Positions 285 to 62,432 of a DNA stretch of 64,000 nucleotides are shown here, piece after piece. This stretch comes from Paramoeba atlantica (Eukaryota; Protista; Discosea): assembly GCA_977017575.1 (NCBI GenBank), contig CDRNVI010000140.1, positions 186,001 through 250,000 on the forward strand. The letters are read 5' to 3'. The notes under the pieces were generated by a model. It was given only the letters and a program-made list of their open reading frames with translations. It searched no databases and was not told where the DNA came from. The first letter of the stretch is position 1. Each line of letters opens with the position of its first letter. Made by a program: the position numbers and the translations under genes.

Positions 285-722
285 TCAATATTTCTTTGCT
301 GGTTTGACAATGGAAGTTTGGAGATGTTCTTCAAAATATTTGATGATCTTATTTTCCGTGCTTTTACTGACATCTCCCGTCGCTTGAAAATCCCAACGCC
401 ATTCGCAACCCCTTTCTTCCAAACGAAACTCTTTCACTGCCTCCTCTTCAACCACAGAATCTCCACAGTCAACCCAAATGAACAGATATTTTCCCTCCAG
501 TCCATTGAGAAGAGCCACCAATCTCTCAAATTTTTTTACTTCATCTTGAAACACCTCTTCCTCTTTGAAGTCAGCTACAGGTAAGTACAGAAGTCCGTCA
601 AAGAGGTCACCATCAGAGATCTTCTCTTCTGATTTGAAGAAGACTTCTGATGATCTTTGGTTCAAGGAATCGGGGATGTGAGGCCAACCTAAATTCACCA
701 AGACCTTTGGTTTGTCGTCCAT
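285..722 (-). CDS. Uncharacterised ~145-aa alpha/beta protein, KPAK-tail superfamily (subfamily B)
   Basis: Intronless ORF MDDKPKVLVNLGW...RLEERGCEWRWDF...IVKPAKKY*. Clear paralog of 2950-3405 and distant paralog of the 55.9-62.4 kb array (shared L.GLEG, RLEERGC.W and KPAK). Confidence 0.75.
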   Translation of the reverse strand: MDDKPKVLVNLGWPHIPDSLNQRSSEVFFKSEEKISDGDLFDGLLYLPVADFKEEEVFQDEVKKFERLVALLNGLEGKYLFIWVDCGDSVVEEEAVKEFRLEERGCEWRWDFQATGDVSKSTENKIIKYFEEHLQTSIVKPAKKY

Positions 723-2949: not shown

Positions 2950-3405
2950 TCAGCCTTTCTTCGCTGGTTTGACCACGCAATATTGGAGACGTTCTTCAAA
3001 ATATTCAACAATCTTCTTTTCCATACTTTCATTGGTTTCTCCTTTCTCTTGAAAACCCCAAAACCAGTCACAACCCCTTTCTACCAAACGGAATCCTTTC
3101 ACTGTCTCCTTTTCGAACATACGATCAGCATAATCAACCCCAAGAAACAAACATTTTCCCTCAAGTCCATTGAGGAGAGTGGCTAATTTCCCAAATATTT
3201 CGATTTCGTCTTGTAATACCACAGGTGGTTTCCCCTGACGAAGACAAAAGTCTTCCGCAGGTAAGTACAGGAGTCCATCGAAGTAGTCACTCTCAGATAT
3301 TTCTTCTTCTGGTTGGAAGATGATCTTTGAGGACCTACTGTTCAATTCTGTTGAAATGTGTACCCAACCCCGATTCACTAACACTTTTGGTTTCTCATCG
3401 TCCAT
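2950..3405 (-). CDS. Uncharacterised 151-aa protein, KPAK-tail superfamily (subfamily B)
   Basis: ORF MDDEKPKVLVNRGW...FRLVERGCDWFWGF...VVKPAKKG*, paralog of 285-722. Confidence 0.8.
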   Translation of the reverse strand: MDDEKPKVLVNRGWVHISTELNSRSSKIIFQPEEEISESDYFDGLLYLPAEDFCLRQGKPPVVLQDEIEIFGKLATLLNGLEGKCLFLGVDYADRMFEKETVKGFRLVERGCDWFWGFQEKGETNESMEKKIVEYFEERLQYCVVKPAKKG

Positions 3406-8600: not shown

Positions 8601-9262
8601 AATTTATTTTTCTCTGTTTTCAAATATTCTTTTTTTTTAATATTCTTCTCTCCTTTCCAAATCACTTTCCTATTTTCTCTTTCTTTCCCCTTGTCTCTCT
8701 CTCCTCTCACACAGGTGATTTCGATATCGCAAAGTCTCTCAGTTCGGATGGCCCAGCGATGACCCTTGTTGGTACTCCTGCATATATGGCCCCTGAAGTT
8801 TTGGCTCAAGAAGGCGCTTATTCTCTTAAAGCTGATGGTTTCTTTTCTTTTCTTTTCTTCTTTTCTCTCTCTTCCTTCCTCTCTTTTCTAATCCTTTGGT
8901 TTTTGTTTTCTTTCATGATTTCTTTCAATTTTCAGTTTATTCACTTGGGATGGTATTGTATGAATTGTTGGCAATGAAGATTCCATATGCAGATGACCCA
9001 CCATTTCGCCTGACAACAAATATTTTACAAGGAATTTTGGTTTTATTTTCTTCCCTTAATTTTTTGGATTTTTTGATTCTTTCAAGGGGAAGGAGGGAAC
9101 AACAAATATTTATTCATGAAAAACAAACAGCCAACACTCCCTGCAATTGGAGAAGAATATTCCGCCATCGTGGAATTGTACAAAAAGTGTGTGGATCTTC
9201 ATCCCCAAAATCGCCCAACAGTCCCCCAAATCAAAGAAATTTTGACAAAAATTCAGACTTAA
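5633..9262 (+). CDS. LRR (RNI-like) + coiled coil + protein kinase, ~14 exons
   Basis: LRR exons (ALETNTHLRRLVL, ALKSLDLSFN, TLTQLILLFN), K/E coil, then kinase motifs ATGGSNAGVY, AMKE, HRDLKSDN, GDFD, GTPAYMAPE, DVYSLG, RPT; stop at 9260-9262. Confidence 0.88.
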
Positions 9263-9745: not shown

Positions 9746-10267
9746 ATGGATGACGAGGAACAATTTGAACTGAGAATCTTGGTGAACTCCAATGAGCGTC
9801 GTTTTCACGACGCAGCCATTTTATCTCTGAACAGTCAAACAAAAAGAATTCTCTTTGTTGAAAGGAAAACAAGTTTGGGAGGTTCCTTTGAAGGACTTCT
9901 CTTCCTCAAGAATGACTGGAACTACAACAAGCAAGAGCAAGAGAAAGATTTGGATGAATTTGAGAGTTGTGTGGAAGATGTTGGTGGGCTCGAAAACAAA
10001 CTGGTTCTTCTTTGGGGTGATCTTCAATATGAAAAATCCCCGCTCGAAAAACGATTGAAAATGTTCAGCGGGTGTACATGGACTTGGATTTTCAACTATG
10101 AATTTCCAAAAGGAGGTCAAGGTTTTTTCTTTTTCTTGTCTTTTTCTTTTCTTTTGTGGTCGAAGGATTCCATGGTCTTCTGAAGAAGTTAAACAGAACA
10201 AAAAATAATCGATTTTTTTGAACAATCGATATCCTCTGATATTAAACCGGCGCGAAATCTGAGATGA
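9746..10267 (+). pseudogene. KPAK-tail superfamily (subfamily C), frameshifted copy
   Basis: Paralog of 10822-11304. The DIKPARNLR* tail lies in a different frame from the body, with an in-frame TAA at 10190 just upstream, consistent with indels relative to the paralog (or an assembly error). Confidence 0.6.
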
Positions 10268-10821: not shown

Positions 10822-11304
10822 ATGGATGATGAGGAACAATATGAACTGAGGATCTTGGTGAACTCCAATGATCGTCGTGTTGATGATTTGTTGATTTCAT
10901 CTCTGAACAGCAAAACAAAAAGAATTCTCTTTGTAGAAAGGGAAACAAGTTTGGGAGGTTCCTTTGATGGACTTCTCTTTCTCAAGAATGACTGGGTCTC
11001 CGATTATGGAGATTTCGATAAAAAAGAGCAAGAGAAAGATTTGAATGAATTTGGAAGTTGTGTGGAAGACGCTGGTGGGCTCGAAAACAAACTGGTTGTC
11101 CTCTGGGGCGAAAGTCAATATGAAAAATTCTTTTTCGAAAAACGATTGAAAAATGTGAGCGGGTGTGCATGGAGTTGGGTTTTCGACAGAGAAGTATTTC
11201 TTCGTTGGGGGAGAAAATCTCTTGAAACAGAAAAAAAGGTCATCGACTTTTTTGAACAATCGATCTCCTATGATATTAAACCTGCGAAATCTGAGAAAGA
11301 ATGA
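10822..11304 (+). CDS. Uncharacterised 160-aa protein, KPAK-tail superfamily (subfamily C)
   Basis: ORF MDDEEQYELRILVNSN...GGLENKLVVLW...SGCAWSW...DIKPAKSEKE*. Tandem duplicate of the 9.4-10.3 kb unit including upstream DNA. Confidence 0.8.
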   Translation: MDDEEQYELRILVNSNDRRVDDLLISSLNSKTKRILFVERETSLGGSFDGLLFLKNDWVSDYGDFDKKEQEKDLNEFGSCVEDAGGLENKLVVLWGESQYEKFFFEKRLKNVSGCAWSWVFDREVFLRWGRKSLETEKKVIDFFEQSISYDIKPAKSEKE

Positions 11305-13329: not shown

Positions 13330-13914
13330 CTTCTTTCTTTTTTGTGACAAGGGAAGAGAAGAGAAGAGAAGAGAAGAGAAGAGCGAGAGGAGAGATAAAA
13401 ATGTTGGTTTTTTCTGTTGGGGTTTGAGGAAAGTGTGAAACTCTTTGAAAGTGGGAGGGGGAACAGACTTGCTCAAGCAAAGGAAGGAAAAGAGAAAGAA
13501 AGAAGAGAAAGAAAGAAGAGAAAGAGAAAGGAGAAAGACTCGTTTCAAATAAAACGAAAAGGAACAGTTCTGATGATGACGATTTACAAGATGAGGGGCA
13601 ATAAAACAGAGGAGCAATAAAACAAAACCGCCAAAGTTTGTAGGGAGTAGATTACGTCAGCAATCCTGCTTTTTTTGAAAGCCGTTGGCCAGAGAAAAAA
13701 GAGAAAAAAAGAAAAGAAAGAAAAGAAGAAAAGAAAGAAGAAAAAGAAGAAAAGAAAGAAGAAAAGAAGAAAAGAAAGAAGAAAAGAAGAAAAGAAAGAA
13801 GAAAAAGAAGGAATGCAAAAAAGGATCAGGCTCATTCTCCTTTCGAAAATTTTTTAACTTGGATACAGGTCACAAGATTTTTGATCCATTTTCTGTGTTT
13901 TGTTGTCTGCCAAG

Positions 13915-42493: not shown

Positions 42494-43429
42494 TCAAAAT
42501 GGCAATTCTTCTCCACCCCAAACAAGGTGTGAGTAATTGGAGTGAGTTAATGATTTGTTGTGAAATGCAAGTCGTCTCTTGGAGCGATCCTTCTTTTCTT
42601 GCAAGAGAGAATCGACTTTTTCATGCAACAATGCAACCAAAAAGTTGTACATTTTAATTTCATCTTTCAATTCAGAGGTGAGAAATTCTGTTGCCTTCTC
42701 TGAGAGATAAAAATCCTTTGGGCTGGTGGGATATTCTTCATTATCATGTTCCATCATCAACCTTTTTTTTGCTTTGTTACATTTCTTTTTGTTGAAGTGA
42801 AAATATTGACAAAAGTTGACGAAATCTTCGACCATGTTTGTTTGGCGAATCGGGAAAACATGCGTTTTGACGAAATGTTCATCAAATTTGTGGAGATACC
42901 ATCGATGGTCCAGTTGCCAGTGTTTTGTTGCGACCAGAGAAGATTGTGCAAGTTGGAGACAATCTTCACCAATTGAGTTATTGGTTTGAAGACCAGTGGT
43001 TAAATTGTTCCGAACTTCCAAAAAATCATTTAAAAAGGGATAACAAGAGAAGAGTTTCCCTTCAGTTGTATTGGCACAGTGATCGTGGACGGTACATCTG
43101 TACTTCCTCCATCTCCAAATCGAAAGAGTTCGAGCAACAGGTTCTCGTATTGTCATCAAAACGGGTCGGCCTTTCACGTCTTCCATTGATGGTGCACAAA
43201 GATGAAAATCTGTTTCAAAACGAAAGACCCTCGACAGAGCTTCGACCATCGAAGTTCCTCCTGTCTTTCCAACATGAATGACAAGAAACTCTGGTCTTGC
43301 GGAGTGGCTGCTGTGAGGTTGTCTTTTGCACAGATCAGAAAAATCTCCTGAATTCATTTGATGGAAGAAACCGAATGAAAAGAGAGTCATCAAGGTCACC
43401 AAAACCAGAACGACTCTCAACCTCCTCAT
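42494..43429 (-). CDS. Golgi-type sulfotransferase (type II membrane)
   Basis: N-terminal TM anchor; 5'-PSB motif HVGKTGGTS and 3'-PB motif REPVARTLS; intronless. Confidence 0.85.
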   Translation of the reverse strand: MRRLRVVLVLVTLMTLFSFGFFHQMNSGDFSDLCKRQPHSSHSARPEFLVIHVGKTGGTSMVEALSRVFRFETDFHLCAPSMEDVKGRPVLMTIREPVARTLSIWRWRKYRCTVHDHCANTTEGKLFSCYPFLNDFLEVRNNLTTGLQTNNSIGEDCLQLAQSSLVATKHWQLDHRWYLHKFDEHFVKTHVFPIRQTNMVEDFVNFCQYFHFNKKKCNKAKKRLMMEHDNEEYPTSPKDFYLSEKATEFLTSELKDEIKMYNFLVALLHEKVDSLLQEKKDRSKRRLAFHNKSLTHSNYSHLVWGGEELPF

Positions 43430-45872: not shown

Positions 45873-46955
45873 ATGCAAACAACTTTCCTCTTTGTGTTGG
45901 CAGTTCTCCTCGCTGTATTTTTTGAGTTTTCGACATCTCCTTGTCTGAGACGGCCTCCTCTGGGTGATGCCTCCGAGCTCTCTCTTATTCACGTTGGCAA
46001 AACTGGTGGGGCCACGTTACTGAAGGCTCTTCACGGGATATTCGAGATTAAGAAAGACTTTCATCTTTGTCGGCCATCTCTCGAAGATGTGAAAGATCGA
46101 CCTGTGATGGTAACAATCCGAGAACCAATTGCTCGAACTCTATCAATTTGGAGATGGGGAAAATTCAAGTGTTCAAATCGCACAGATTGCTTTGGTTCTC
46201 CTCACGAACTCTTTGAGTGTTTCCCCTTTCTTAATGACTATTTGGAAGCCAGAGGAAATTTGTCAAACAACAACAGAGCGAGTTTAAGCGATTCTTGCCT
46301 CCGGTTTGCAGATTCTCCTGAAGTACCATCAACCCATTGGCAATTCGATCATCGTTGGCACCTTGAAAAGTTCGATGAAGACTTTCTCAAAGAAGTTTTT
46401 CCTGTTCGTCAGTCCAACTTGGTAGATGATTTTGTTTCGTTTTGTTTGTATTTCAACTTCGAAAGAGAGAAGTGCTTCAACACGAAAAAGAGGCTGACTG
46501 TCATCCACACAAATACAAAGTCTCACACAGAACCAAAGGATTACTATCTTTCGAGTGAAGCAAGAGAGTTCTTGGAGTCTGAGTTGAAAGAAGAAATTGA
46601 AATGTACAATCATCTTGTAAATATCACAAACGGAAAAATTGAAACAGTTCTTCCTCAACTCAAAGATTTTGAAGAAATGATCAGTCATGGGAAAATAGCA
46701 AAACTCTTCAGAGAAGGAACGAGAGAAGAGAGACGGAATAAGAGAAGAGAGGAAAAAAGAAGAGAGAAAATCCGAATGCAAATGCAAAAAGAGAGGGAAG
46801 AGAGACAAGAAGAAAGAAGAAGAAAAGTGGAAGAGGAAAGATTGAAGAGAGAGATTGAAAGAGAGAGAAAAGAGAAAGAGAGAATGAGAAAGAAATTTTA
46901 CATCCTTCTTTTTGTCTTCTTGGTTTTTGTTACACTGACTTTCTGTTTGTGGTAA
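45873..46955 (+). CDS. Sulfotransferase with signal peptide, coiled coil and C-terminal TM anchor
   Basis: HVGKTGGAT and REPIARTLS motifs; E/K/R coil; ends FYILLFVFLVFVTLTFCLW*. Confidence 0.85.
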   Translation: MQTTFLFVLAVLLAVFFEFSTSPCLRRPPLGDASELSLIHVGKTGGATLLKALHGIFEIKKDFHLCRPSLEDVKDRPVMVTIREPIARTLSIWRWGKFKCSNRTDCFGSPHELFECFPFLNDYLEARGNLSNNNRASLSDSCLRFADSPEVPSTHWQFDHRWHLEKFDEDFLKEVFPVRQSNLVDDFVSFCLYFNFEREKCFNTKKRLTVIHTNTKSHTEPKDYYLSSEAREFLESELKEEIEMYNHLVNITNGKIETVLPQLKDFEEMISHGKIAKLFREGTREERRNKRREEKRREKIRMQMQKEREERQEERRRKVEEERLKREIERERKEKERMRKKFYILLFVFLVFVTLTFCLW

Positions 46956-47565: not shown

Positions 47566-48792
47566 ATGCAAAGTGTTGTAGGATTTGGAATAATCCTCGC
47601 TGTATTTTTCGATTTTTCTTGCGCATCTCCTTGTCTGAGACGGCCTCCTCGCAATGATACATCGGAGTTCTCTCTTATTCACGTTGGCAAAACTGGTGGG
47701 ACCACACTGATGGCTGTTCTTCCCAAGAAATTCGACATTCAAAGCGATTTCCACCTTTGCCAACCATCTCTCGAAGATGTGAAAGATCGACCTGTGATGG
47801 TAACAATCCGAGAACCAATTGCTCGAACTCTGTCAATTTGGAGATGGGGAAAATTCAAGTGTTCAAATCGCCCAGCTTGCTTTGGTGCTCCTCGAGAACT
47901 CTTTGAGTGTTTCCCCTTTCTTAATGACTATTTGGAAGCCAGAGGAAATTTGTCAAACAACAACAGAACGGGTTTAAGTGATTCTTGCCTCCAGTTTGCA
48001 GATTCTCCTGAAGTACCATCGCTCCATTGGAAATTCGATCATCGTTGGCACCTTGAAAAGTTCGATGAAGACTTTCTCAAAGAAGTTTTTCCTGTTCGTC
48101 AATCCAACTTGGTGGAGGATTTTGTTGCGTTTTGTTTGTATTTCAACTTCGAAAGAGAGAAGTGTTTCAACATGCAAGAGAAGCTGAGTTTGACACACAC
48201 AAATACAAAGTATCACACAGAACTAAAGGATTACTATCTTTCGAGTGAAGCAAGAGAGTTCTTGGAGTCTGAGTTGAAAGAGGAAATTGAAATGTACAAT
48301 CATCTTGCAAATATCACAAATGACAAAGTTCAAACGGTTTTTCAACGAGAAAAGAAAAGGAGAGATGAGACGGAGAGAAGAAAAGAAATCGAAAGGGAAA
48401 GACACAAAAAAACCATGAAAGAAAAGAAAAAAATTGAGATAAAAAAGAAAGAAGAGGACAAAAAGAGAAAAATGAATGAGAAAAAAGGAAAGGGGAAAAT
48501 AGAAGAGAGGAGAAAAGAAGAAGAGAAAAATAGAAACGAAGAGAAAGAAAAGTTGATAAAGGAAGAGAAAAACATGGAAAAAAAAGATGAAAAGAGAAAA
48601 GAGATTGAGGAAGAAGAGAAAAAAAGAATTGAAGAGAAAAAAATGTTGTTCAAGGAAGAGGAAAAGAGGAAAAAGAGAATTGAAGAAGAGAAGAAAAAGA
48701 TAAAAGAAAGAATCAAGAAAGAAGAGCAAGAGAGAAAAGAGAAGGAAGAGAGAGACAAGGAACAAGAAGAAGAATCAAAGAAGAAAGAGTAA
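47566..48792 (+). CDS. Sulfotransferase paralog; the TM tail lies beyond an in-frame TAA
   Basis: Near-identical catalytic domain to 45873-46955 with a longer coil; the same frame continues after TAA 48790-48792 to ...GFLFFFVFVICLNLSFCLWRK* at 48906. Confidence 0.82.
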   Translation: MQSVVGFGIILAVFFDFSCASPCLRRPPRNDTSEFSLIHVGKTGGTTLMAVLPKKFDIQSDFHLCQPSLEDVKDRPVMVTIREPIARTLSIWRWGKFKCSNRPACFGAPRELFECFPFLNDYLEARGNLSNNNRTGLSDSCLQFADSPEVPSLHWKFDHRWHLEKFDEDFLKEVFPVRQSNLVEDFVAFCLYFNFEREKCFNMQEKLSLTHTNTKYHTELKDYYLSSEAREFLESELKEEIEMYNHLANITNDKVQTVFQREKKRRDETERRKEIERERHKKTMKEKKKIEIKKKEEDKKRKMNEKKGKGKIEERRKEEEKNRNEEKEKLIKEEKNMEKKDEKRKEIEEEEKKRIEEKKMLFKEEEKRKKRIEEEKKKIKERIKKEEQERKEKEERDKEQEEESKKKE

Positions 48793-49072: not shown

Positions 49073-49951
49073 TCATCTTTTGGCAGGTTTAACATTTACA
49101 ACATCATCTCTTTTCATAATTGCCTTGTGTCCACTTGAAGCAAAACTAACTGCTGGATACAATGGTTGTGAAATATCTTCTTTTGTTAATTTAAACGCAA
49201 CTCCTCGATCAACTCCATTATCACAAAACCGAATTTCTCTGAGTTGTTGTTGGAACAAAATTCAGAAAATGAAACTTGAAAAACAAAAACTAAATTCCAA
49301 ACCTTTCATTTGCAGAATATTCCATTTGCACAATGAAGAAATTTTTCTCGTTTGAAACTTCAAAAAAGATGTCAACACAAATAACCCCCCACAGTTTCAG
49401 AACAAAAACAAGAAAGTTTAAAAACAAAAAACAAGAAAGAAAACCTTCTTCCCAGATAGGACTGTAGGGAACCAACTTTTTGGAATGGTTCAATTTTCCT
49501 TCCACACTCCAACCCCATGATTTTTTTGTTGATCCTAAAAGGACAGGATAGCCGTTCCCTTTCCTTTTCATTTGAGAAAAGAGAGGGATAAGAGAAATTA
49601 GAAAAATGAAAAAGAGAACCGTGGAGAGGTTGATCAGAAATGCCAATTAGATAAGCTCTTCGAAAAATTGGTTGGCCATTAATGCGAACCCCAAATTCAA
49701 TTCGGAAATTTGAGGAAAAATCAAGTGGTTCTTCCCCAATTGCAACTTTTGTATCAGACTTTCAACATTTGAAAGAAAAAAATTAGAGAGAGAAAAGGAG
49801 GAGAGAAAAATTGCGCTAAAACCTTCTGAAAGTGAATCACTTTTTGTTCATGAGAGAAAGAAAAGAAGTTTTCAAATGGTTGCCAACGAAGACAACATGA
49901 AGAATCAATTGTTCTCTTGACAGAATTGTCCCACGTTACTTCATCAGCCAT
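49073..49951 (-). CDS. SPRY/B30.2-domain protein ending VKPAKR
   Basis: Exons give AIGEEPL, YLIGIS, LLGSTKKSWGW, IRFCDNGVDRGVAF, LYPAVSF (typical SPRY strands); ~5 exons. Confidence 0.78.
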
Positions 49952-50006: not shown

Positions 50007-50091
50007 TCCGGTCAACCGGAATCGAACCAGTGACCTAGAGATGTCTACAACTTGCTACAGTCTCCCGCTCTACCAGCTGAGCTATGACCGG
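50007..50091 (-). tRNA. tRNA-Tyr: tRNA-Tyr(GTA) with 12-nt intron
   Basis: Identical by eye to 5452-5536. Confidence 0.95.
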
Positions 50092-50176
50092 ATACTTGAA
50101 AAAATGACAAAAACGAATGTTGAAAAAGAATGATTTGGTGTATTTGAGTTTTGTTTGTTTTCTGTTTTTCTCTTTG

Positions 50177-51086
50177 ATGGGTGTTGGCCAATCGCGATCA
50201 AAAGAGGAAGAATGGGTGAATGGACTCTGCAAAATCGTGGTGGTGGGTTCCTTGAATGTGGGTTCTCGATTTTCTTTGAAGAAATTTCTCTTTTTTCGTA
50301 TTTTTTGACTGAAAACCAGGAAAGACAAGTCTCGTCTTCCGAGAAAAGGAGGGCTCGTGGACTGATGAACCGCCCTTTCTCTCCTCTGGTAAGAAGTGAA
50401 CCACCAAAGAGAAAAACAAGAAACAAATTCTCAAACTGAGTTCTTTATTTTCTAGAACTCTACGAAAACAAAGAGAAAGAATATTCAATTCAAGATACAG
50501 AAGGTGGTGGTGAAAGCCCTTTGGCCCGGTATTTTTCTTTGTTTCTTTTTACCTTTCCTTGTTCTTTCTTTTAAATTCGAACACTAGATTTCGAATTTTA
50601 AATTACCCCAACACAAATTGTTTTTTACTTTGCTTTTCTGTGGATTCTTCTCCGTCTTTAGACGCCATTATCTCAAAATGGTATCCTGAGGTTCTTTTTT
50701 TGAACACCAATTTTGATTTTCAAAAAGTCTGTGCACCGAGCAAAACTCTCTTTAAAGGTGAAAAAGTATGGACCACAGAACCCAAAAGCGAGAAAAATCG
50801 TTGTTGGACTAAAAAGTGACCTCCGAAAAGACAAGAGACACATCGAGGATCTTGGTTTTTTGAGAAGAAAAGAAAGAAGATCAAACAAATTCCAAACTAA
50901 TTCTTTGTCTATGTTTTTTTAGAAAAAAGAGGAGAGCGCCTTATCACACTTGAAGAAGGACAGAAAGTTGCCGATAGACTTTCTGTCCCTTACATGGAAT
51001 GCTCTGCTTTAACTGGGGAAGGAGTAGCAAATATATTTTTTGCTGCAAAAAATCAGCTTTTTGGTCCAAAACATGCTTCTTCTTAA
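50177..51086 (+). CDS. Atypical Rho-family small GTPase, N-terminal MGxxxS, no CAAX
   Basis: Spliced: MGVGQS...KIVVVGSLNVGKT...IQDTEGGG...YPNTNCFLLCFSVD...KWYPE...IVVGLKSDLRKD...YMECSALTGEGV...KHASS*. Confidence 0.82.
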
Positions 51087-51430
51087 ATTATGACAAAAAA
51101 ATCAGACAAAATAGAGATAGAGAAAACAAAATAATTTTATTCTCAATTTCGAAATTTGGTCTCCCAAACAACCCAAAACTCCAAATGAGAATAAAAAAAG
51201 ACATTAATTTACAAAAGGCAAGCCTCTCTCTCTTCTAGTTGGACTGGACTTGCATTTTCGCACCAAGATTGACAAGATCGGATCAATCTTGAAAAGATGA
51301 CCCCGTTGCCAAAAAATAAGAAATCACCAAGGACTCAAAAATGGTTTTGTCACTTTTGAGGACAGTTTGTTGCCACACTCCCATTCCTTCTTGAATACCC
51401 AAGCTAAAAATAAATGAGAATGAAAAAAAA

Positions 51431-52340
51431 AGAACCTTGCCAATTGTGTGAAGAGAAGATATTAGCTCGCGCCTTGTCAATGACTTTTATCCTTGTTTCA
51501 GAACAATTGTCATCTTGAACTCCGAGAATTCGATTCAAAAAACAGTTCAGGACAGAAAAGAAAGGACTTACATTGAAGAATTACCTTTTCAACCTTTTTC
51601 CTCGAAACTCGAAACTCTTTGGGTCGCGAAAACGAAAGATAACAGAGAGAAAGAACAAAAATCTGAGGGAAATGGGAGAGACCTCAGGAGAAGAATCAAA
51701 AGGAACCTATTATTCAATCTGGAGGAAAAAAGAAAAAGCAAACATGATAAAACTGAAATTGAATGAAAGTCGAGAGAAAAGACGGATCCAGGAAAACAGG
51801 AAAAGGAAACGTTGACTTGAAAAATGGAAAATCAAAGGGGAACAAAGCTTCTCTTTTTGGGAAGACAAACACAGAAAAACAGGAAAAGAAACGAAAACAC
51901 CTCAAAAAAACCAAAATAAAACCTTGCCGATTGTGTGAAGAGAAGATATTGGCGCCTTGTCAACGACTTTTATCCTTGTTTCAGAACAATCGTCATCTTG
52001 AACTCCGAATTCAAAAAAACAGTTCAGGACAGAAAAAAGAGGACTTACATTGAAGAATTACCTTTTCAACCTTTTTCCTTGAGACTCGAAACTCTTTGGG
52101 TCGCAAAAACGAAAGATAACAGAGAGAAAGAACAAAAATCTGAGGAAAATGGGATTATTATTCAATCCGGGGGAAAAAAAAAAGAAAAAGCAAACATGAT
52201 GAAGGTCGAGAGAAAAGATGGAACCAGGAAAACAGGAAAAGGAAACGTCGACTTGAAAAATGGAAAATCAAAGGGGAACAAAGCTTCTCTTTTTGGGAAA
52301 ACAAACACAGAAAAACAGAAAAAGAAACGGAAACATCAAG
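51431..52340. repeat. Two tandem copies of a ~420-490-bp unit of unknown nature
   Basis: Copies begin aaccttgcc.attgtgtgaagagaagatatt at ~51432 and ~51919; long identical blocks with indels; no consistent ORF between copies. Confidence 0.85.
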
Positions 52341-52641: not shown

Positions 52642-54375
52642 TTAGGCGTACAGAGCGAATTCAGTGATGTTCAAAAGATTCTCACCAATAACTCCAGGAG
52701 TATCGGGATCGAGGTCCATATACAAATCGACAAAGTTTGTATTTGGAGCGTTGATGCATACAGACATGATGACATACGCACAAAAAGCAGAACACGGGAT
52801 GGAGAAAATCCATCCCAGACAAATGTAGGCGAGCATCTTCCAGTTGACAGCCTTCACATTCCCACTACACAGACCAACAGCAACTGTCGCTCCAGTGATA
52901 CAATGGGTGGTACTAACCGGCAACGACACCCCAGTAGCAGTGAGAATAGCAATAATCGATCCCATCTCCGCAGAAAATCCTCTCGAAGGAGAAAGCTTGG
53001 TCATGTTGGATCCTAAGTTGGCCATGATTCTCCAACTCAGAAGAAAAAGGCCAATGACGATCCCACCACCACCATAAGCGAGAATCCAAGTATCAACCTC
53101 GACCTCACCAGAGCTGGTACCGGTGTTCCAAATGGCGTACACAGTTGCCAAAGGAGCAACAGCATTCGCCACATCATTCGCTCCGTGGGCAAAGGAAGCA
53201 GTCGCACAAGAAAACAATTGAAGCCACTTGAAGAGATTCTCAGTTTTGGGATCGTAGTCTTTCACGTGAGAGTGGAGTTCTCTTTGTTCTTCATTTTTTG
53301 CCCCCTCGTAGTCTTGGTTGATCCCGTAGAGCACTGTCTTGTTGAGAAGTGCCATGGTTTTTCCTCCGCAAGTTGATTTTGTAACATCTTCTTCTGAATC
53401 AGTGTTCTCCGCATCATCATCAACAACAACAACCTCATCACCCCCCATCTCGTTCACCTCGTTCATCTCTTTCATCTCTTTTTCTCCCTCTTCTTCCAGT
53501 TTCTTCGCGTCCTTCTTTTCGTAGTATCGAACAATCGGGAGGAAAACAGCAACACTCAAGAAAGCCACGAAAAAAGAGGGTGGAAGAATGATGGCCATTT
53601 GAATACCAGGGTCTTTCTCATCCAAATTCAAACGAGGGCTTCCTTTGTAGACAAAGAAACACATAATCATGATTGTGGTGCAGAAAGCGTAGATGGGAGT
53701 CGCGATGGTGGCTTTTCGATAAGAATTCTGTCGTTCCAAAATACACAAACGAGTGACGGTGAAGATGAGGGCAGCCAAAACACCAGAGATAACTGGGCTC
53801 ATGACAAAGCCAAAGACGATTCGAGCAACACCGCTGTCGAAACCCCAATTAACTCCGTCTGCACCGTATACTGCAATTCCCATTCCAATCACACCACCCA
53901 CGATCGAGTGAGTTGTAGACACAGGCATTTTTATCGCCGTTGCAAAGGTATCCCACGTTCCACTACTCAAACAAGCGACGAACATTCCGAACATCAAGAG
54001 GTCCTGTCTGTTCGCGAAGAGATCCACGTCCACAATGTCTTTTCGAATCGTCGAAGAAACGTTGTTCCCCAAAGCAACCGCACCAAGAAACTCCGTAACA
54101 GAAGCAATCATCACCACACTTCTCATGGATAACAACCCACTTGCGATGGCCGAAGCGAATGAGTTTGCGACGTCGTTCGCACCAATGGCGAAAGCGGAAA
54201 GAAAAGCTGCTATCATGGTGAGAGCAAAAATCCACGTGAGCTGGTCTGCCTGTAAATCACAAAATACCAGGTCTGAGATAATTGGAATTGATTCCACATC
54301 GATAGTCCATGGCGAGGGAGAAGGGAAAAAGACATCTGAACCGCCAAACGGAGAAGGAGAAGGTAATGAGGCCAT
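52642..54375 (-). CDS. Inorganic phosphate transporter, PiT/SLC20/Pho89 family
   Basis: 577-aa intronless ORF with both PiT signatures (GANDVANS, HGANDVANA), PVSTTH twice, and many TM segments. Confidence 0.95.
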   Translation of the reverse strand: MASLPSPSPFGGSDVFFPSPSPWTIDVESIPIISDLVFCDLQADQLTWIFALTMIAAFLSAFAIGANDVANSFASAIASGLLSMRSVVMIASVTEFLGAVALGNNVSSTIRKDIVDVDLFANRQDLLMFGMFVACLSSGTWDTFATAIKMPVSTTHSIVGGVIGMGIAVYGADGVNWGFDSGVARIVFGFVMSPVISGVLAALIFTVTRLCILERQNSYRKATIATPIYAFCTTIMIMCFFVYKGSPRLNLDEKDPGIQMAIILPPSFFVAFLSVAVFLPIVRYYEKKDAKKLEEEGEKEMKEMNEVNEMGGDEVVVVDDDAENTDSEEDVTKSTCGGKTMALLNKTVLYGINQDYEGAKNEEQRELHSHVKDYDPKTENLFKWLQLFSCATASFAHGANDVANAVAPLATVYAIWNTGTSSGEVEVDTWILAYGGGGIVIGLFLLSWRIMANLGSNMTKLSPSRGFSAEMGSIIAILTATGVSLPVSTTHCITGATVAVGLCSGNVKAVNWKMLAYICLGWIFSIPCSAFCAYVIMSVCINAPNTNFVDLYMDLDPDTPGVIGENLLNITEFALYA

Positions 54376-55418: not shown

Positions 55419-55604
55419 CTAATTTTCACTTTTCGTTGGTTTGAGATTCGTTTTGAATTCTCATCAAAGAATTTATGGAACGAACCGGCAACTTTTTCAT
55501 CTTTTTTCCGACTCTGGATCACTTTCATCGACAAATCTGCAGAACCAACAACGGAAAGAAAAAAAGAAAAAAACGGGGACAGGCAGCAAAGTTGTTTCAA
55601 TCAT
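55419..55604 (-). pseudogene. 3' relic of an array gene (frameshifted KPAK tail)
   Basis: DEKVAGSFHKFFDENS followed by out-of-frame TNLKPTKSEN*; paralog of 56517-56741. Confidence 0.5.
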
Positions 55605-55871
55605 CGAACCAAAAACCTTTTTCTCTTCAAAAGTCAAAAAGACTAAAAACCTTTTAATTCATTTCTTGGAACAATCAAAGAGAAAAATTGGAAAGAACTT
55701 TTCGAGGAGCAAGAAAAGGAGAGAGAGAGAGAGAACGTTTTGTTTTACATCCACCATTCTGTTCCTCAGAAAAGAAGGGAAAGGGAAACCAAAGGTTTTT
55801 TCGAGTTAATATTTTTGAGTGTGCCAGAGCTCTCTTCTCACAGATTCTCACAGATTATTTTTCTCCATCTT

Positions 55872-56324
55872 CTATTTTTCTCTTTTTGCTGGTTTGAGAA
55901 CAATAGTTTGTGTATTCTCTTCAAAGAATCGATCCATCTTCGGAATAACCTTCTCATTGCCCCCAGCCCCAAACCCCCAAACACATCCTCTTTCTTCCAA
56001 TCTCAACCTTTTCACCATTTCTTCTTTCAACTCTCCATCTCTTTCCTCAACCCAAACATACAGAACCACCCCTTCAATCCCACCAAGACGAGAGACATCT
56101 TTCTCGAAAAGATCAATTGCTTCTTCAAAATACTGTTCTTCTTCAGAAAGGGTTTCTGGTGGGTAGAAAAGAATCCCTTGGCAATATTTAAAATCAGAAT
56201 CCAGATCCGAAAAGACTAAACTCAATTCTTTTTTTTTGTTTTCTTCGTTCAACCATGAAACAATATCCTTGTCACCAATCACCAAAATTTTTGGTTTTGA
56301 TTCACTTTCATCAATATCTGCCAT
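55872..56324 (-). CDS. KPAK-tail array gene D1 (150 aa)
   Basis: MADIDESESKPKILVIG...VSRLGGIEGVVLY...RLEERGCVW...VLKPAKREK*. Confidence 0.85.
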   Translation of the reverse strand: MADIDESESKPKILVIGDKDIVSWLNEENKKKELSLVFSDLDSDFKYCQGILFYPPETLSEEEQYFEEAIDLFEKDVSRLGGIEGVVLYVWVEERDGELKEEMVKRLRLEERGCVWGFGAGGNEKVIPKMDRFFEENTQTIVLKPAKREK

Positions 56325-56516
56325 CGTCTTTTTTCGTCCTCCCACCCCACAAGAAAGAAGAGAAAACAAGAAAAAGAATGAAGGGTTGAGTCTCAGTCTG
56401 GTTTTCCAGGACAATAAGGAATGTAGAAACCCTAATAAACAAGAAAAGGAGAGAAGAACAGAGAAAAACAACAGAAGAGAAAAGGAGAAAAAAAAGGTTC
56501 TCAGGAAAAAACGCAT

Positions 56517-56741
56517 TCACTTTTTCTCAAGGTTTTTTTTTGTCTCGTTCTTTTCCAAACTTTGGAAGAGTTCTTGATCTTCTATTTTTTTTCTCTTTTT
56601 TGCTGGTTTGAGATTTGTTTGTGAATTGTCATCAAAGAATTTATGGAACGAACCCGCAACTTTTTCATCTTTTTTCCAACTCTGGATCACGGAAAGAAAA
56701 AAAGAAAAAAGGGGGACAAGCAGCAAAGTTGTTTCAATCAT
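56517..56741 (-). pseudogene. 3' relic or possible 74-aa microprotein carrying the array KPAK tail
   Basis: MIETTLLLVPLFSFFLSVIQSWKKDEKVAGSFHKFFDDNSQTNLKPAKKRKK...; only the last helix and tail match the array genes. Confidence 0.4.
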
Positions 56742-56937
56742 CAAATTAAAAATCTTTTTCTCTTCAAAAGTCAAAAAACGAAAAGCTTTTAATTCATTTC
56801 TTCGAACAATCAAAGAGAAAAAATGGAAAGAACTTTTAGAGGAGCAAGAAAAGGAGAGAGAAGTGTTTTCGAGTTCATATTTTTGTGTGGGCGGCTCTCT
56901 TCTATGAGAATTCTTGAAGATTATTTTTCTCCATCTT

Positions 56938-57390
56938 CTATTTTTCTCTTTTTGCTGGTTTGAGAACAACAGTTTGTATATTCTTTTTAAAGAATTGATC
57001 CATCTTCGGAATAATCTTCTCATTGCCCCCAGCCCCAAACCCCCAAACACATCCTTTTTCTTTTAATCTCAAACTTTTCACCATTTTTTTTTTCAATTCT
57101 TCATCACTTTCCTCAACCCAAACATACAGAACCACCCCTTCAATCCCACCAAGACGAGAGACATCCTTCTCGAAAAGATCAATTGCTTCTTCAAAATGTC
57201 CTTCTTCAGAAAGGGTGTCTGATGGGAAGAAAAGAATCCCTTGGCAATCTTTGAAATCAGAATCCAGATCCGAAAAGACAAAACTCAATCCATTTAGTTT
57301 TTTTTTTTTGTTGAACCATGAAACAAGACCCTCGTCACCACCAATCACCAAAATTTTTGGTTTTGATTCACTTTCGTCAATATCCGCCAT
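56938..57390 (-). CDS. KPAK-tail array gene D2 (150 aa)
   Basis: Intact paralog ending VLKPAKREK*. Confidence 0.85.
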   Translation of the reverse strand: MADIDESESKPKILVIGGDEGLVSWFNKKKKLNGLSFVFSDLDSDFKDCQGILFFPSDTLSEEGHFEEAIDLFEKDVSRLGGIEGVVLYVWVEESDEELKKKMVKSLRLKEKGCVWGFGAGGNEKIIPKMDQFFKKNIQTVVLKPAKREK

Positions 57391-57639
57391 CGTCTTTCTT
57401 CCTCCTCCCCCACAAGAAAGAGAAAACAGAAGGGAGGGTTGGATGTTCGTCCTCCAAGACAACAAGGAATTACGAAAGAAGGAGATTAAAAAGCAAAGAA
57501 GAGAAAGAGAAAGAGAGAAAGAGAGAAAGAGAAGGAAACGAAAAAAAGGTTTTTCTGTTTGGGGGAAAAACGCAATATTTTTTCAGTTTTTTCAGTTTTT
57601 TCAGTTTTGTCTCCCTCTTTCCAAACTTTGGAAGAGATC

Positions 57640-58057
57640 TCAATCTTCTCTTTTTTCTCTTTTTGCTGGTTTGACAATCACTTGTAAATTCTCTTTAAAG
57701 AATTGATCCATCTTCGGAATAATCTTATCATTGCCCCCAGCCCCAAACTTCCAAACACATCCTCTTTCTTCCAATCTCAACCTTTTCACCATTTCAAACA
57801 TACAGAACCACCCCTTCAATCCCACCAAAACGAGAGACAGCTTTCTCGAAAAGATCAATTGCTTCTTCAAAATGTCCTCCATAAAAAAGGAAGGATGGTG
57901 GGGAGAAAAGAATCCCTTGGCAATCTTTGAAATCAGAATCCAGATCCGAAAAGACAAAACTCAATTCTTTTTGTCTGTTCAACCTTCCAACAATCCACGT
58001 ATCACCACCAATCACCAAAATTTTTGGTTTTGATTCACTTTCATCAATCTCCGCCAT
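57640..58057 (-). pseudogene. KPAK-tail array gene D3, frameshifting internal deletion
   Basis: Split over ORFs 57794-58120 and 57640-57957; the segment between VVLYV and MVKRLRL is deleted. Confidence 0.75.
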
Positions 58058-58293
58058 CGTCTTTCTTCGTCCCACAAGGAGAGAACACAAAAGAAAAAGA
58101 ATCAAGGGTTGGTTTTCCAAGACAACAAGGAATTAAGAAACCCCAAAAAAAACAATAGAAGGTTAGAAAAGCAACCAAAAGAAGAGAAAGAAAGAGAGAA
58201 AAAGGAGGAAAAACGAAAAAAAAGTTTTTTCTGTTGTTTGGGGAAAAAGCTTCTTTTTCAGTTTTTCAAGTTTTTCTTCTGTTTTGTCTCACT

Positions 58294-58731
58294 CTATTTT
58301 TCTCCTTTTGCTGGTTTGAGATTCGTTTGCAAAGTCTCATTAAAGAATTTATCCATTCTTGGAGCAATTTCTTGAATGAACCCAGCTCCAAACTCCCAAA
58401 CACACCCTCTTTCTTCCAATCTCAACCTTTTCACCATTTCCTCTTTCCGCTTCTGATCACGTTTACCAACCCAAATATACAGAACCACCCCTTCAATCCC
58501 ACCAAGACGAGAGACATCTTCCTCGAAAAGATCAATTGCTTTTTCAAAATCTCCATAAGAAAGGAGGGATGGTGGGGAGAAAAGAATCCCTTGGCAATCT
58601 TTGAAATCAGAAGACGAATTCGAAAAGACAAAACTCAATTCTTTTTGTTTGTTCAACAATCCAACAAGCTGTGGGGCATCACAAATCACCAAAATTTTTG
58701 GTTTTGATTCACTTTCATCAATATCCGCCAT
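58294..58731 (-). CDS. KPAK-tail array gene D4 (145 aa)
   Basis: Intact paralog ending LKPAKGEK*. Confidence 0.85.
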   Translation of the reverse strand: MADIDESESKPKILVICDAPQLVGLLNKQKELSFVFSNSSSDFKDCQGILFSPPSLLSYGDFEKAIDLFEEDVSRLGGIEGVVLYIWVGKRDQKRKEEMVKRLRLEERGCVWEFGAGFIQEIAPRMDKFFNETLQTNLKPAKGEK

Positions 58732-58920
58732 CGTCTTTCTTCCTCCTCTCCCCCCGACGAGAAAGAAGAGAAAAAGAAGGGAGGGTTGAGTGTTAGTCCT
58801 CCAAGACAGCAGCAAGGAATGAAGAAACCCCAAAAAGAAGGATAGCGGAATAGCAGAGAAAAGTCCTCCAAGACAACAAGGAATTATGAAGAAGGAGAGA
58901 AGAGAAAGAGAGAAAGAGAG

Positions 58921-58951
<31 letters not shown>

Positions 58952-59036
58952 AAGAGAGAAGGAAACGAAAAAAAGATTTTTCTGTTTGGGAAAAACACAA
59001 TATTTTTTCAGTTTTTTTCCAAACTTTGAAAGGATC

Positions 59037-59483
59037 TCAATCTTCTCTTTTTTCTCTTTTTGCTGGTTTGAGATTCGTTTGCAAAGTCTCATTAAAGAAT
59101 TTATCCATCATTGGAGCAATTTCTTGAAGAAGCCCAGCTCCAAACCCCCAAACACACCCTCTTTCTTCCAATCTCAACCTTTTCACCATTTCCTCTTCCC
59201 ACTTCTGATCAGTTTTAGCAACCCAAATATACAGAACCACCCCTTCAATCCCACCAAGACGAGAGACATCTTCCTCGAAAAGATCAATCGCTCCTTCAAA
59301 ATGTCCATAAGAAAGGACGTTTTGTGGGTAGAAAAGAATCCCTTGGCAATCTTTGAAATCAGAATCCAGATCCGAAAAGACAAAACTCAATTCTTTTTGT
59401 CTGTTCAACCTTCCAACAATCCGCTTATCACCACCAATCACCAAAATTTTTGGTTTTGATTCACTTTCATCAATATCCGCCAT
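59037..59483 (-). CDS. KPAK-tail array gene D5 (148 aa)
   Basis: Intact paralog ending LKPAKREKRED*. Confidence 0.85.
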   Translation of the reverse strand: MADIDESESKPKILVIGGDKRIVGRLNRQKELSFVFSDLDSDFKDCQGILFYPQNVLSYGHFEGAIDLFEEDVSRLGGIEGVVLYIWVAKTDQKWEEEMVKRLRLEERGCVWGFGAGLLQEIAPMMDKFFNETLQTNLKPAKREKRED

Positions 59484-59721
59484 TGTCTTTCTTCGTCCTC
59501 TGCCCCCCCCCGACGAGAAAGAAGAGAAAAAGAAGGGAGGGTTGAATGTTAGTCCTCCAAGACTACAAGGAATTTATGAAAGAAGGAGAGAAGAGAAAGA
59601 GAGAAAGAGAAGGAAAAACGAAAAAAGGTTTTTTTGGGGGAAAAACACAATATTTTTCAGTTTTTTCAGTTTTTTCAGTTTTTCAGTTTTGTCTCCCTCT
59701 TTCCAATCTTTGGAAGAGATC

Positions 59722-60159
59722 TCAATCTTCTCTTTTTTCTCTTTTTGCTGGTTTGACAATCGCTTGGAAATTTTCTTGAAAGAATTGATCCATCTCCGGG
59801 ATAATCTCAGACCCAGCCCCAAACTCCCAAACACATCCTCTTTCTTCCAATCTCAACCTTTTCACCATTTCCTCTTTCAAACATGCATCACCTCGAGTAA
59901 CCCAAATATACAGAACCACCCCTTCAATCCCACCAAGACGAGAGACATCTTCCTCGAAAAGATCAATCGCTTCTTCCAAATGTCCTTCTCTATAAAGGTA
60001 CGATGGTGGGCAGTAAAGAATCCCTTGGCAATCTTTGAAATCAGAAGGCGAATTCGAAAAGACAAAACTCAATTCCTTTTTGTTCAACCATTCAACTACC
60101 AAGGTAAAACCAAACACCAAAATTTTTGGTTTTGATTTACTTTCATCAATGTCCACCAT
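59722..60159 (-). CDS. KPAK-tail array gene D6 (145 aa)
   Basis: Intact paralog ending VKPAKREKRED*. Confidence 0.85.
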   Translation of the reverse strand: MVDIDESKSKPKILVFGFTLVVEWLNKKELSFVFSNSPSDFKDCQGILYCPPSYLYREGHLEEAIDLFEEDVSRLGGIEGVVLYIWVTRGDACLKEEMVKRLRLEERGCVWEFGAGSEIIPEMDQFFQENFQAIVKPAKREKRED

Positions 60160-60374
60160 CGTCTTTTTTCGTCCTCCAAGAAAGGAGAGAAAACAAAAGA
60201 AAAAGAACCAAGGGATGGAATTTCCAAGACAACAAGGAATTAAGAAAACAAAAGAACAGAGAAAAGCAACAACCGAAGAAGAAAGAGAGAAAGAGAGAAG
60301 GAAAAACGAAAAAAAGTTTTTTCTGTTTGGGGGAAAAACGCAATATTTTTCAGTTTTTTCTGATTTGTCTCCCT

Positions 60375-60818
60375 CTATTTTTCTCTTTTTGCTGGTTTGA
60401 GATTTGTTTGTGAATTGTCATTAAAGAATTTATCCATTATTGGAGCAATTTGTTCATCAGACCCAGCTCCAAACCCCCAAACACATCCTCTTTCTTCCAA
60501 TCTCAACCTTTTCACCGTTTCCTCTTCGAATCCCCCATCCCTTTCATCAACCCAAACAAACAGAACCACCCCTTCAATCCCACCAAGACAAGAGACATCT
60601 TCCTCGAAAAGATCAATTGCTTCTTCAAAATAATATTCTTCTACAGAAAAGGATTCTTTTGGGTAGAAAAGAATCCCTTGGCAATCTTTGAAATCAGAAT
60701 CCAGATCTGAATAGACAAAACTCAATCCCTTTTGTTTGTTCAACCATGGAACAATGTACTCCTCACCACCAATCAACAAAATTTTTGGTTTTGATTCACT
60801 TTCATCGACGTCTGCCAT
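60375..60818 (-). CDS. KPAK-tail array gene D7 (147 aa)
   Basis: Intact paralog ending LKPAKREK*. Confidence 0.85.
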   Translation of the reverse strand: MADVDESESKPKILLIGGEEYIVPWLNKQKGLSFVYSDLDSDFKDCQGILFYPKESFSVEEYYFEEAIDLFEEDVSCLGGIEGVVLFVWVDERDGGFEEETVKRLRLEERGCVWGFGAGSDEQIAPIMDKFFNDNSQTNLKPAKREK

Positions 60819-61088
60819 CGTCTTTCTTCGTCCTCCAAGAAAGAAGGGGCTGAGTGTGAGTCCTCCAAGATAACAAGGAATTACAAGGGAGGGGTTTGAG
60901 TGTTAGTCTTCCAAGACAGCAGCAAGGAATGAAGAAACCCCAAAAAAGAAGAAGGAGAGAAGAACAGATAAAAGTAACAACAACAGAAGAAGAGAAAGAA
61001 AGAGAGAAAGAGAAGGAAAAACGAAAAAAAGTTTTTTCTGCTGTTTGGTGAAAAAACCTTCTTTTTCAGTTTTCTGTTTTGTCTCGCT

Positions 61089-61523
61089 CTATTTTTCTCT
61101 TTTTGCTGGTTTGAGATTTGTTTGTGAATTGTCATTAAAGAATTTATCCATTCTTGGAGCAAACTGTTCGTCAGACCCAGCTCCAAACCCCCAAACACAT
61201 CCTCTTTCTTCCAATCTCAACCTTTTCACCATTTCCACTTCGAATCCCCAATCACTTTCATCAACCCAAATATACAGAACCACCCCTTCAATCCCACCAA
61301 GACGAGAGACATCTTTCTCGAAAAGATCACTTGTTTTTTCAAGAGAACATCCTTCAGAAAAGGTTTGTGGTGGGTAGAAAAGAATCCTTTGGCAATCTTT
61401 GAAATCAGAAGACGAATTCGAATACACAAAACTCAATCCATCTTGTTTGTTCAACCAGCTCTGAATGTACTTGTCACCGAGCACCAAAACTTTTGGTTTT
61501 GATTCACTTTCATCATCCGCCAT
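61089..61523 (-). CDS. KPAK-tail array gene D8 (144 aa)
   Basis: Intact paralog; upstream sequence shared only with D9. Confidence 0.85.
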   Translation of the reverse strand: MADDESESKPKVLVLGDKYIQSWLNKQDGLSFVYSNSSSDFKDCQRILFYPPQTFSEGCSLEKTSDLFEKDVSRLGGIEGVVLYIWVDESDWGFEVEMVKRLRLEERGCVWGFGAGSDEQFAPRMDKFFNDNSQTNLKPAKREK

Positions 61524-62000
61524 TTGTTGAAAAACCCCAACCTTCCAAAACCAAAAACTCTTTCTCTACCAAAAGAGAACCAAAAAACAAAACTATTTCT
61601 CCAACAAAAAAGAAATTCAAAAAATGGTTTTTGGCGGTTTAAATTATTGGGTAAGAGTTTTAGAGTGAGTGATACAGGATCACTGTACCACTCAAAAAGT
61701 ACAGAATAGGAAAAAAGGGAAAAACAGAAAAACATAGAGAAGCGAGGCTCCTGAGATCTACAAATTTCACCGATGAAAGCAGGTAGAGAGGAACAAAATC
61801 ACTTCGTACAGGAGAACCACAATGATAAGTATTTCTGTGAGAAGTGGCTTGTTCGGAGACAAGAAGAAATAAAGGGGGGGGTCGTGGGTGGGAGAAGAAG
61901 AATAAAGAGAAAGAAAGAGAGAGTTTGGCTTTTTTTTCTGCTGTTGGGGAAAACGCTTCTTATTCAGTTTTCTGTCAACTTTTTTCTGTTTTGTCTCACT

Positions 62001-62432
62001 CTATTTTTCTCTTTTTGCTGGTTTGAGATTTGTTTGTGAATTGTCATTAAAGAATTTATCCATTATTGGAGCAAACTGTTCGTCAGGCCCAGCCCCAAAC
62101 TCCCAAACACATCCTCTTTCTTTCAATCTCAACCTTTTCACCATTTCCTCTTTCAACTCTCCATCACTTTCATCAACCCAAACATACAGAACCACCCCTT
62201 CAATCCCACCAAGACGAGAGATATCTTCCTCGAAAAGATCAATTGCTTCTTCAAGAGAACCTCCTTCAGAAAAGGCTAGTGGTGGGTAGAAAAGAATCCC
62301 TTGACAATCTTTGAAATCAGAAGACGAATTCGAATACACAAAACTCAATCCATCTTGTTTGTTCAACCAGCTATGAATGTACTCGTCACCAAGCACCAAA
62401 ACTTTTGGTTTTGATTCACTTTCATCCGCCAT
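62001..62432 (-). CDS. KPAK-tail array gene D9 (143 aa)
   Basis: Intact paralog ending LKPAKREK*. Confidence 0.85.
   Translation of the reverse strand: MADESESKPKVLVLGDEYIHSWLNKQDGLSFVYSNSSSDFKDCQGILFYPPLAFSEGGSLEEAIDLFEEDISRLGGIEGVVLYVWVDESDGELKEEMVKRLRLKERGCVWEFGAGPDEQFAPIMDKFFNDNSQTNLKPAKREK

Follow-up and report, generated by a model that had tools for sequence, protein, structure and literature searches.

What kind of protein is encoded by a tandem array of short, closely related genes in the amoeba Paramoeba atlantica, and what does the variability of its loops reflect? We examined 64,000 nucleotides of assembly GCA_977017575.1 (contig CDRNVI010000140.1, positions 186,001 to 250,000 of the forward strand), hereafter the window, with positions counted from its first letter. 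The window is AT-rich, intron-rich eukaryotic DNA, and positions 55872-62432 hold one gene in nine tandem copies, as the original prediction had stated, all of them pointing the same way on the minus strand. We found that these genes form a birth-and-death multigene family, with pseudogenes and exchange between copies, and that the predicted variable face of the encoded proteins is under diversifying selection. The family may constitute a germline repertoire of cytosolic binders, built on an Arf-derived pseudoGTPase scaffold and provided with a common docking tag, a reading to which we give about even credence. The Arf assignment, the mapping of the variable loops to the small-GTPase G motifs and the link to a shared C-terminal tail are new.

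Eight out of the nine copies were intact single-exon open reading frames of 143-150 amino acids. Named A to I, and each with its ATG at the higher coordinate, the intact copies were A (55872..56324, 150 amino acids), B (56938..57390, 150), D (58294..58731, 145), E (59037..59483, 148), F (59722..60159, 145), G (60375..60818, 147), H (61089..61523, 144) and I (62001..62432, 143). Copy C (57640..58057) is a pseudogene, in which a 32-nt deletion near 57795 causes a frameshift. Copy E served as the reference for residue numbering and for the first AlphaFold model, and the identity of the intact copies to it was 70-82%. The genes had been described as encoding intronless proteins of about 145 amino acids, which holds for the coding sequence only. 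Upstream of the ATG, copies A-G carry a motif around CTTGTTGTCTTGGAGGAC, at times in repeated form and with CTAAC and a pyrimidine tract after it; this motif is absent from H and I, and may be a candidate 5' untranslated region (5'-UTR) intron or promoter element. The array is flanked by an intronless gene for a PHO4 phosphate transporter (52642-54375, minus strand; Pfam E 1.5e-115).

We also found two relics of 3' ends on the minus strand (55419..55476 and 56586..56666, the second with the codons of the KPAK tail discussed below), which are present because a block of 300-480 bp with a gene 3' end was duplicated (55423-55900 and 56589-56966). The relics, the frameshifted copy C and the recombination between copies agree with the birth-and-death turnover that had been proposed earlier. 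An assembly artefact was ruled out as the origin of the array, since a second assembly of the same sample matched the window at 99.4-99.9% identity. Copy C was broken in that assembly too, and copy B was split there by a 1-nt indel. On one of its contigs (L004, 1-949) the place of copies G-I upstream of copy F (at window position 60376) was taken by unrelated DNA and by a short 3' relic, and on another (L007, 10380-10806) copy G was joined to an allele of F in which a Thr of loop 1 is replaced by Ala. This suggests that haplotypes may differ structurally upstream of copy F, and the nine-copy layout is perhaps not found on every haplotype.

The array is part of a much larger family. We counted at least 53 distinct full-length members in all the sequences gathered, some of them only 19-33% identical. 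Divergent members were present elsewhere in the window at 285..722 (minus strand; 145 amino acids, about 38% identical to copy E), 2950..3405 (minus strand; 151 amino acids), 9746..10267 (plus strand; interrupted near the 3' end by an intron or a disruption) and 10822..11304 (plus strand; 160 amino acids). Further tandem arrays with pseudogenes were detected on other contigs (L006, 5-5417; L103, 6001-8241; L001, 8609-18262; L002, 6488-13647), and on contig L102 (339-8471) an array of members of about 155 amino acids adjoins a RING/B-box/NHL gene. Searches of protein collections returned 28-36 relatives, and all nine contigs looked up for them belonged to one European Nucleotide Archive (ENA) sample, ERZ24900291. 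No relatives outside that sample were found in the protein collections, the word-based search being length-limited, or in metagenome contigs of the Joint Genome Institute (JGI). A profile search for fusions to another domain gave no credible case, and a match of 1046 amino acids was a repeat protein matched at positions 39-83 only. Judging from these searches, the family is known only from assemblies of this organism and appears to be lineage-restricted. The family proteins should be cytosolic, because no signal peptide, transmembrane segment, CaaX box or myristoylation Gly was visible in them; on the lack of a visible signal, transmembrane or CaaX segment we rejected a secreted or membrane protein.

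The fold was predicted with two AlphaFold models, of copy E (model 1) and of a member 26% identical to it (model 2). The predicted local distance difference test (pLDDT) scores were 82 and 84, respectively, and both models comprised five strands alternating with five main helices. The top 50 Foldseek matches of model 1 were G-domain entries throughout. In VIA-align the best match of model 1 was Arf1 (Z 11.2, root-mean-square deviation (rmsd) 2.5 over 120 residues), and model 2 was aligned to Arf1 with Z 12.2 (rmsd 2.9 over 131), its first 43 rows being all Arf/Arl. Template modelling (TM) scores by query were 0.59-0.62 for Arf, Arl and CENP-M, versus 0.37-0.54 for most flavodoxins and receivers. 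Based on ESM features, a distant member was nearest to CENP-M (0.90), then to Ras, Arf and Roc, and 10 out of 10 neighbours belonged to one clan. Finally, we compared the family with three full-length Arf loci, the translations of which were read first. In an ordered-block test canonical Arf scored 55 (z 6.4), with 8 out of 8 family blocks on the expected elements. These models and matches suggest that the scaffold probably descends from the Arf clan.

Several results weigh against this descent, and part of them would also fit the same repertoire of variable-face binders on a scaffold derived from a receiver (CheY-like) or flavodoxin-like domain, in which case the likeness to Arf would be topological only. 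Searches of Pfam and PDB sequences, with a single sequence and with a profile, gave no match, and the identity of the family to Arf sequences was 11-15%. In the unbiased wide structure search G-domains reached Z 10.6 and 11.4 for the two models and receivers Z 9.7 and 10.4, a gap of only about 1. The gap is small because a G-domain without beta2 has the topology of a receiver domain, namely five parallel strands with five helices. The Atlas shape search gave receivers (TM about 0.6), and in Foldseek model 2 matched flavodoxins and receivers mixed with Arf. The ESM Atlas search with copy E gave no usable match, and the BFVD search gave weak mixed matches only. The hhalign comparisons of the family with the three Arfs (P 0.022) and with CheY (P 0.04) were not significant and do not separate the two; those with a single CheY, a single Arf and, exon by exon, the Rho-like gene of the window were not significant either. 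The ordered-block test was post hoc, designed once the Arf idea existed, and it gave two divergent viral-type Arfs only z 2.3, like CheY (z 1.9-2.7). A receiver origin is nevertheless unlikely in our judgement: Arf/Arl lead for both models, the ESM features point to the CENP-M/Ras/Arf clan, and the CheY blocks score 3-12, versus 55 for canonical Arf. Moreover, the catalytic residues of receivers are absent by column counts, with no acidic pair after beta1, no phospho-acceptor Asp ending beta3 (strand 3 ends in F/L/Y, followed by Y/L and P) and no conserved Lys or Lys-Pro after beta5.

Two GTPase genes were also noted. The Rho-like gene of the window (50176-51086, plus strand) is divergent and contains introns; it starts with MGxxxS, retains a P-loop-like motif, has DTEG at G3 and lacks a CaaX box, and a homology search with one of its exons gave no match. 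An intact Arf GTPase gene lies on a giant-virus metagenome-assembled contig (L010, 2585-3112, minus strand).

We examined what remains of the G motifs in the family. The G1 P-loop, GxxxxGK[ST], was found in 0 out of 53 members. The starts of the first and second strands are about 21 residues apart, versus about 42 in Arf (L013), which indicates that switch I, with the Thr of G2, and the beta2 interswitch are missing. The WDxGG(Q) of G3 is also missing, the equivalent column being hypervariable (E/D/N/S/K/T), and the G5 motif is gone. At G4 no member has an in-place NKxD: the N and K positions are variable, and the Asp position (D92) is kept in 36 out of the 40 aligned members. The N-termini are short and acidic, and the array copies carry Ala or Val at position 2, without Gly2 or an amphipathic helix. 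An active GTPase was rejected on the loss of the P-loop, switch I, G3, NKxD and G5, and the proteins, if folded as modelled, should neither bind GTP nor switch. The family is a predicted class i pseudoGTPase by the definition of PMC5593906, an assignment that rests on the probable Arf-clan fold and on the motif loss. Orthology to CENP-M appears unlikely from the sequences and was rejected, as no PF11111 match was obtained at E up to 10 and the at least 53 paralogues stand against a single-copy kinetochore protein.

The hypervariable loops map onto the sites of these motifs. The original prediction had named four such loops, and all four vary, with the quoted sequence blocks and loop variants present in our alignment; the count, however, is five, as a segment after strand 2 had been overlooked. 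In copy E (minus strand), variable segment 1 (residues 17-24, 59412..59435) corresponds to the site of the deleted P-loop and the start of helix 1. The fifth segment (residues 36-41, 59361..59378) is the G3/switch II remnant after strand 2, and loop 2 (residues 52-62, 59298..59330) follows the strand equivalent to Arf beta4. Loop 3 (residues 89-95, 59199..59219) is at the position of G4 and holds D92, and loop 4 (residues 117-122, 59118..59135) is at the position of G5. All five segments follow the C-ends of strands in both AlphaFold models, in agreement with the earlier claim that the loops follow beta-strands. Because strand C-ends share one edge in a parallel doubly wound sheet, the five loops would lie together on one face of the alpha/beta domain, as had been proposed, and this face would be the former nucleotide face; the placement is drawn from the topology of the structural matches, not from coordinates.

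Loops that ring the ancestral pocket could also mean that this pocket was retuned for a range of small molecules (second messengers containing guanine, RNA ends, metabolites), and that the proteins are sensors and not protein binders. The guanine-reading Asp of G4, which is kept inside a hypervariable loop, would fit such a role, but it is situated in the first turn of helix 4 and may simply cap the helix. The P-loop is deleted, and the rate and breadth of change, with five loops and indels, fit protein antagonists better; we regard small-ligand sensing as improbable.

Selection was assessed with our own codon code, which returned the same M0 likelihood as IQ-TREE. Among the eight intact copies the M0 omega (dN/dS, the ratio of nonsynonymous to synonymous rates) was 1.23, and the likelihood-ratio test (LRT) statistic of M7 versus M8 was 100.6, with 14% of sites at an omega of about 10, in line with the diversifying selection originally suspected. 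Without gapped columns the LRT was 95.9 for the eight copies and 226.9 for 18 close copies. Most of the selected sites, 12 out of 15 and 13 out of 15, were located in the C-edge loops (Fisher p 1.5e-6 and 3e-8), which had been delimited from the AlphaFold model and not from variability, and the posterior was 1.0 at L39 and D40 in the fifth segment. When synonymous-rate variation and multi-hit terms were included, the LRT fell to 26.5 and 66.4 (p 2e-6 and p 4e-15, respectively) and omega was 4-6; with segment-specific trees the LRT was 75.5 and 111.4. The signal of diversifying selection on the variable face survives the gap, synonymous-rate, multi-nucleotide and recombination controls. Recombination among copies was itself significant (p 0.001 and 0.004), and the same loop variants recurred across the gene tree.

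The same pattern was observed in distant arrays. In L006 the proportion of nonsynonymous differences (pN) was 0.161 in the loops and 0.038 elsewhere, with a synonymous proportion (pS) of about 0.06, and the same loops vary; in L102 the LRT was 29 with omega 5.3, and the same face varies. In the window array pN was 0.355 in the loops, versus 0.089 elsewhere, and it was higher than the divergence of the upstream flanks (0.07-0.24, an underestimate from local alignment). Hypermutation of the loops was ruled out, as strict fourfold sites were not raised there (0.065 in loops and 0.110 elsewhere). Other young paralogue pairs in the window had omega 0.43-0.61. Among the genes of the window are three intronless sulfotransferase-like paralogues (42494-43429, minus strand; 45873-46955 and 47566-48792, plus strand), two of them with long charged C-terminal tails and the close pair with omega 0.61.

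Other estimates speak less clearly for recognition. The loop-only omega was 1.4-1.7, not significantly above 1, because the loops have a raised estimated dS as well, and the pairwise pN/pS was near or below 1 in 3 out of the 5 loops. Conversion tracts shorter than the segment length could inflate the LRT. Outside the loops omega was 0.9-1.1, thus the core is weakly constrained, and only 36 out of 103 non-loop columns were invariant among the 18 close copies; the invariant core of the original prediction did not hold. About half of the non-loop sites were near omega 0.2, and a few further selected sites were found on helices.

A redundant, decaying array with no recognition role, in which unconstrained loops escape the gene conversion that homogenises the core, would account for the omega of the core, the dS of the loops, the significant recombination and the many pseudogenes and relics. 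It would also account for the core synonymous divergence between copies D and E, which is 0.023 and far below that of the flank (0.127). Decay does not readily explain why the LRT remains significant under the rate-variation, multi-hit and segment-tree controls, or why loop pN is about twice the flank divergence. The loops of the opposite edge are equally exposed and yet among the least variable (tree dN 0.22, versus 1.91 in the variable loops), three subfamilies that are 30-36% identical vary on the same face, and motifs and tail are retained even across the most divergent members (19-33% identity). There is little chance, in our view, that relaxed constraint is the whole explanation.

The best-conserved feature of the family is its C-terminus. 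All 53 full-length members (53/53) end in a hydrophobic residue followed by K-P-A-K/R (59058..59072, minus strand, in copy E), and K, P and A are invariant across the 40 aligned members. The same tail precedes the stop codon of unrelated genes of the window, labelled here from their sequences and not from database matches: an ankyrin-repeat gene (951-2563, plus strand; tail at 2534, IKPAQ), a leucine-rich repeat (LRR) gene (14420-15347, plus strand; tail at 15328) and a SPRY-like gene (49076-49330, minus strand; tail at 49079). Further unrelated genes with this ending were found on L003 (8260, minus strand) and L005 (3378-3821, plus strand). Exact matches to the tail numbered 15 in the window, versus 0.11 expected, and 2 out of the 15 were outside the family. 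The LRR gene repeats, in short form, the first exons of an LRR-kinase gene (5817-9260, plus strand), diverges from it at the last shared exon and ends in DIKPAKR. Since the kinase is without the tail, this was apparently either gained at the new C-terminus of the LRR gene or lost on fusion in the kinase. A literature search for such a tag gave nothing relevant. The ankyrin-repeat gene resembles a second one at 11700-13330 (minus strand): the two have one repeat per exon and near-identical introns, and lie in opposite orientation.

The reading of the family as a germline repertoire of binders can be set out as follows. The ancestor would be a small GTPase of the Arf/Arl type, from which the P-loop, switch I and beta2, most of switch II, G5 and the myristoylated N-terminus disappeared, leaving a five-stranded parallel G-domain like CENP-M, without GTP binding or switching. 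The five loops of the C-edge, which in Arf form the nucleotide cradle, would now make up one variable surface for binding. A repertoire of at least 53 variants would have arisen as genes were duplicated in tandem, loop segments were exchanged between copies and indels kept the frame, all under positive selection, while some copies decayed to pseudogenes. In the cytosol each protein would bind a foreign target of its own, the likeliest candidates being proteins from intracellular bacteria, from viruses or from other invaders of a phagotroph; changing foreign targets are suggested because diversification has been sustained across subfamilies. The invariant KPAK tail would hand the target to a host partner shared with the ankyrin, LRR and SPRY-like proteins that carry this tail as well. 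An adaptor, with variable capture at one end and shared docking at the other, is proposed because the scaffold is fixed, a single face diversifies and the invariant tail is common to all members; under this reading the family would have a binding or immune function.

A predicted Arf-like fold under selection of the arms-race type could instead belong to decoys that mimic host Arf, and that soak up or trigger bacterial effectors and toxins with Arf as cofactor or target. Host Arf is used by bacterial effectors (MARTX MCF, PMC6731672), and the SopF-Arf1 and cholera toxin-Arf6 complexes were among the structural matches of the family. However, small-GTPase partners typically bind switch I/II (PMC12490416), and decoys are the less likely reading because the switch region read by such partners (switch I and beta2) is deleted in the family. 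A decoy should converge on host Arf, whereas the family is only 11-15% identical to it and its members are mutually divergent. We consider Arf mimicry quite unlikely.

If the repertoire reading is true, the family would be a new scaffold among natural variable binders, in which the active-site face of an enzyme is reused as a recognition surface, and it would offer a testable entry to the recognition of invaders by amoebae. Single-exon proteins of 145 amino acids are easy to express, and the shared tail is a direct bait for the downstream partner. A bolder version, which we hold as rather doubtful, is that a small GTPase was turned into an antibody-like scaffold with the dead nucleotide face as paratope. 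In this version the five-residue tag would link the family and the ankyrin, LRR and SPRY-like binders to one downstream machine (degradation, autophagy or membrane targeting), as a modular cell-autonomous immunity of the amoeba. In the literature searched, no class i pseudoGTPase was described as an expanded family under diversifying selection. A eukaryote-wide survey of Arf excluded sequences with disrupted motifs (PMC8358228), and a family of this kind would have escaped it for that reason.

Other loci of the window were recorded as well. A divergent histone H4-like gene with one intron is located at 4669-5056 (plus strand). A tRNA-like sequence is present twice, at 5454-5538 and 50008-50092, 44 kb apart, both times with about 250 bp of the same flank, and a unit of about 480 bp with candidate lysine-rich open reading frames is tandemly duplicated at 51430-52340.

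Finally, we compared the family with known systems. Arf/Arl proteins are its best structural match (Z 11-12 for the predicted models), and their strand-helix blocks line up with those of the family, the strand ahead of G4 and the G4 Asp among them. They differ from it in the P-loop, switch I, beta2, WDxGG, the NK of NKxD, G5, Gly2 and the amphipathic N-terminal helix, all lacking in the family, and in sequence. Receiver (CheY-like) and flavodoxin-like domains have the same strand order, a ligand site at the same sheet edge and Z up to 10.4, but the family is without their phospho-acceptor Asp, acidic pair and conserved Lys, and their Z and TM are lower than those of Arf. CENP-M, a pseudoGTPase with five parallel strands, has lost switch I and beta2, and its P-loop and G3 are degenerate (PMC4080450); these features are shared with the predicted fold of the family, and CENP-M is the top neighbour of a distant member by ESM features (TM 0.61 to model 2). 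In contrast, CENP-M is conserved and single-copy, serves as a kinetochore scaffold and has been described as Rab-related, while the family is Arf-like, multicopy and provided with a hypervariable face and a KPAK tail.

Known class i pseudoGTPases are protein-interaction modules (PMC12490416). The pG1 and pG2 domains of p190RhoGAP (pG1 being among the structural matches of the family), the psGD of AAGAB and the dynein LIC resemble the family in having a G fold without G motifs and a role in protein interaction (PMC5593906, PMC12490416). They are conserved and have fixed partners, AAGAB binds through the surface opposite to the pocket, and for none of them has an expanded repertoire under positive selection been described. 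Plant NLR/LRR genes, the ROCO LRRs of brown algae (PMC11378527), TRIM genes and ankyrin arrays share with the family the tandem birth-and-death, the exchange between copies and the positive selection that acts on one face while the scaffold stays fixed. In these germline repertoires variation resides in a repeat or propeller domain, and a GTPase domain, where there is one, is a conserved switch, whereas in the family described here the predicted G-domain itself is variable and is accompanied by no signalling domain, only by a tail of five residues.

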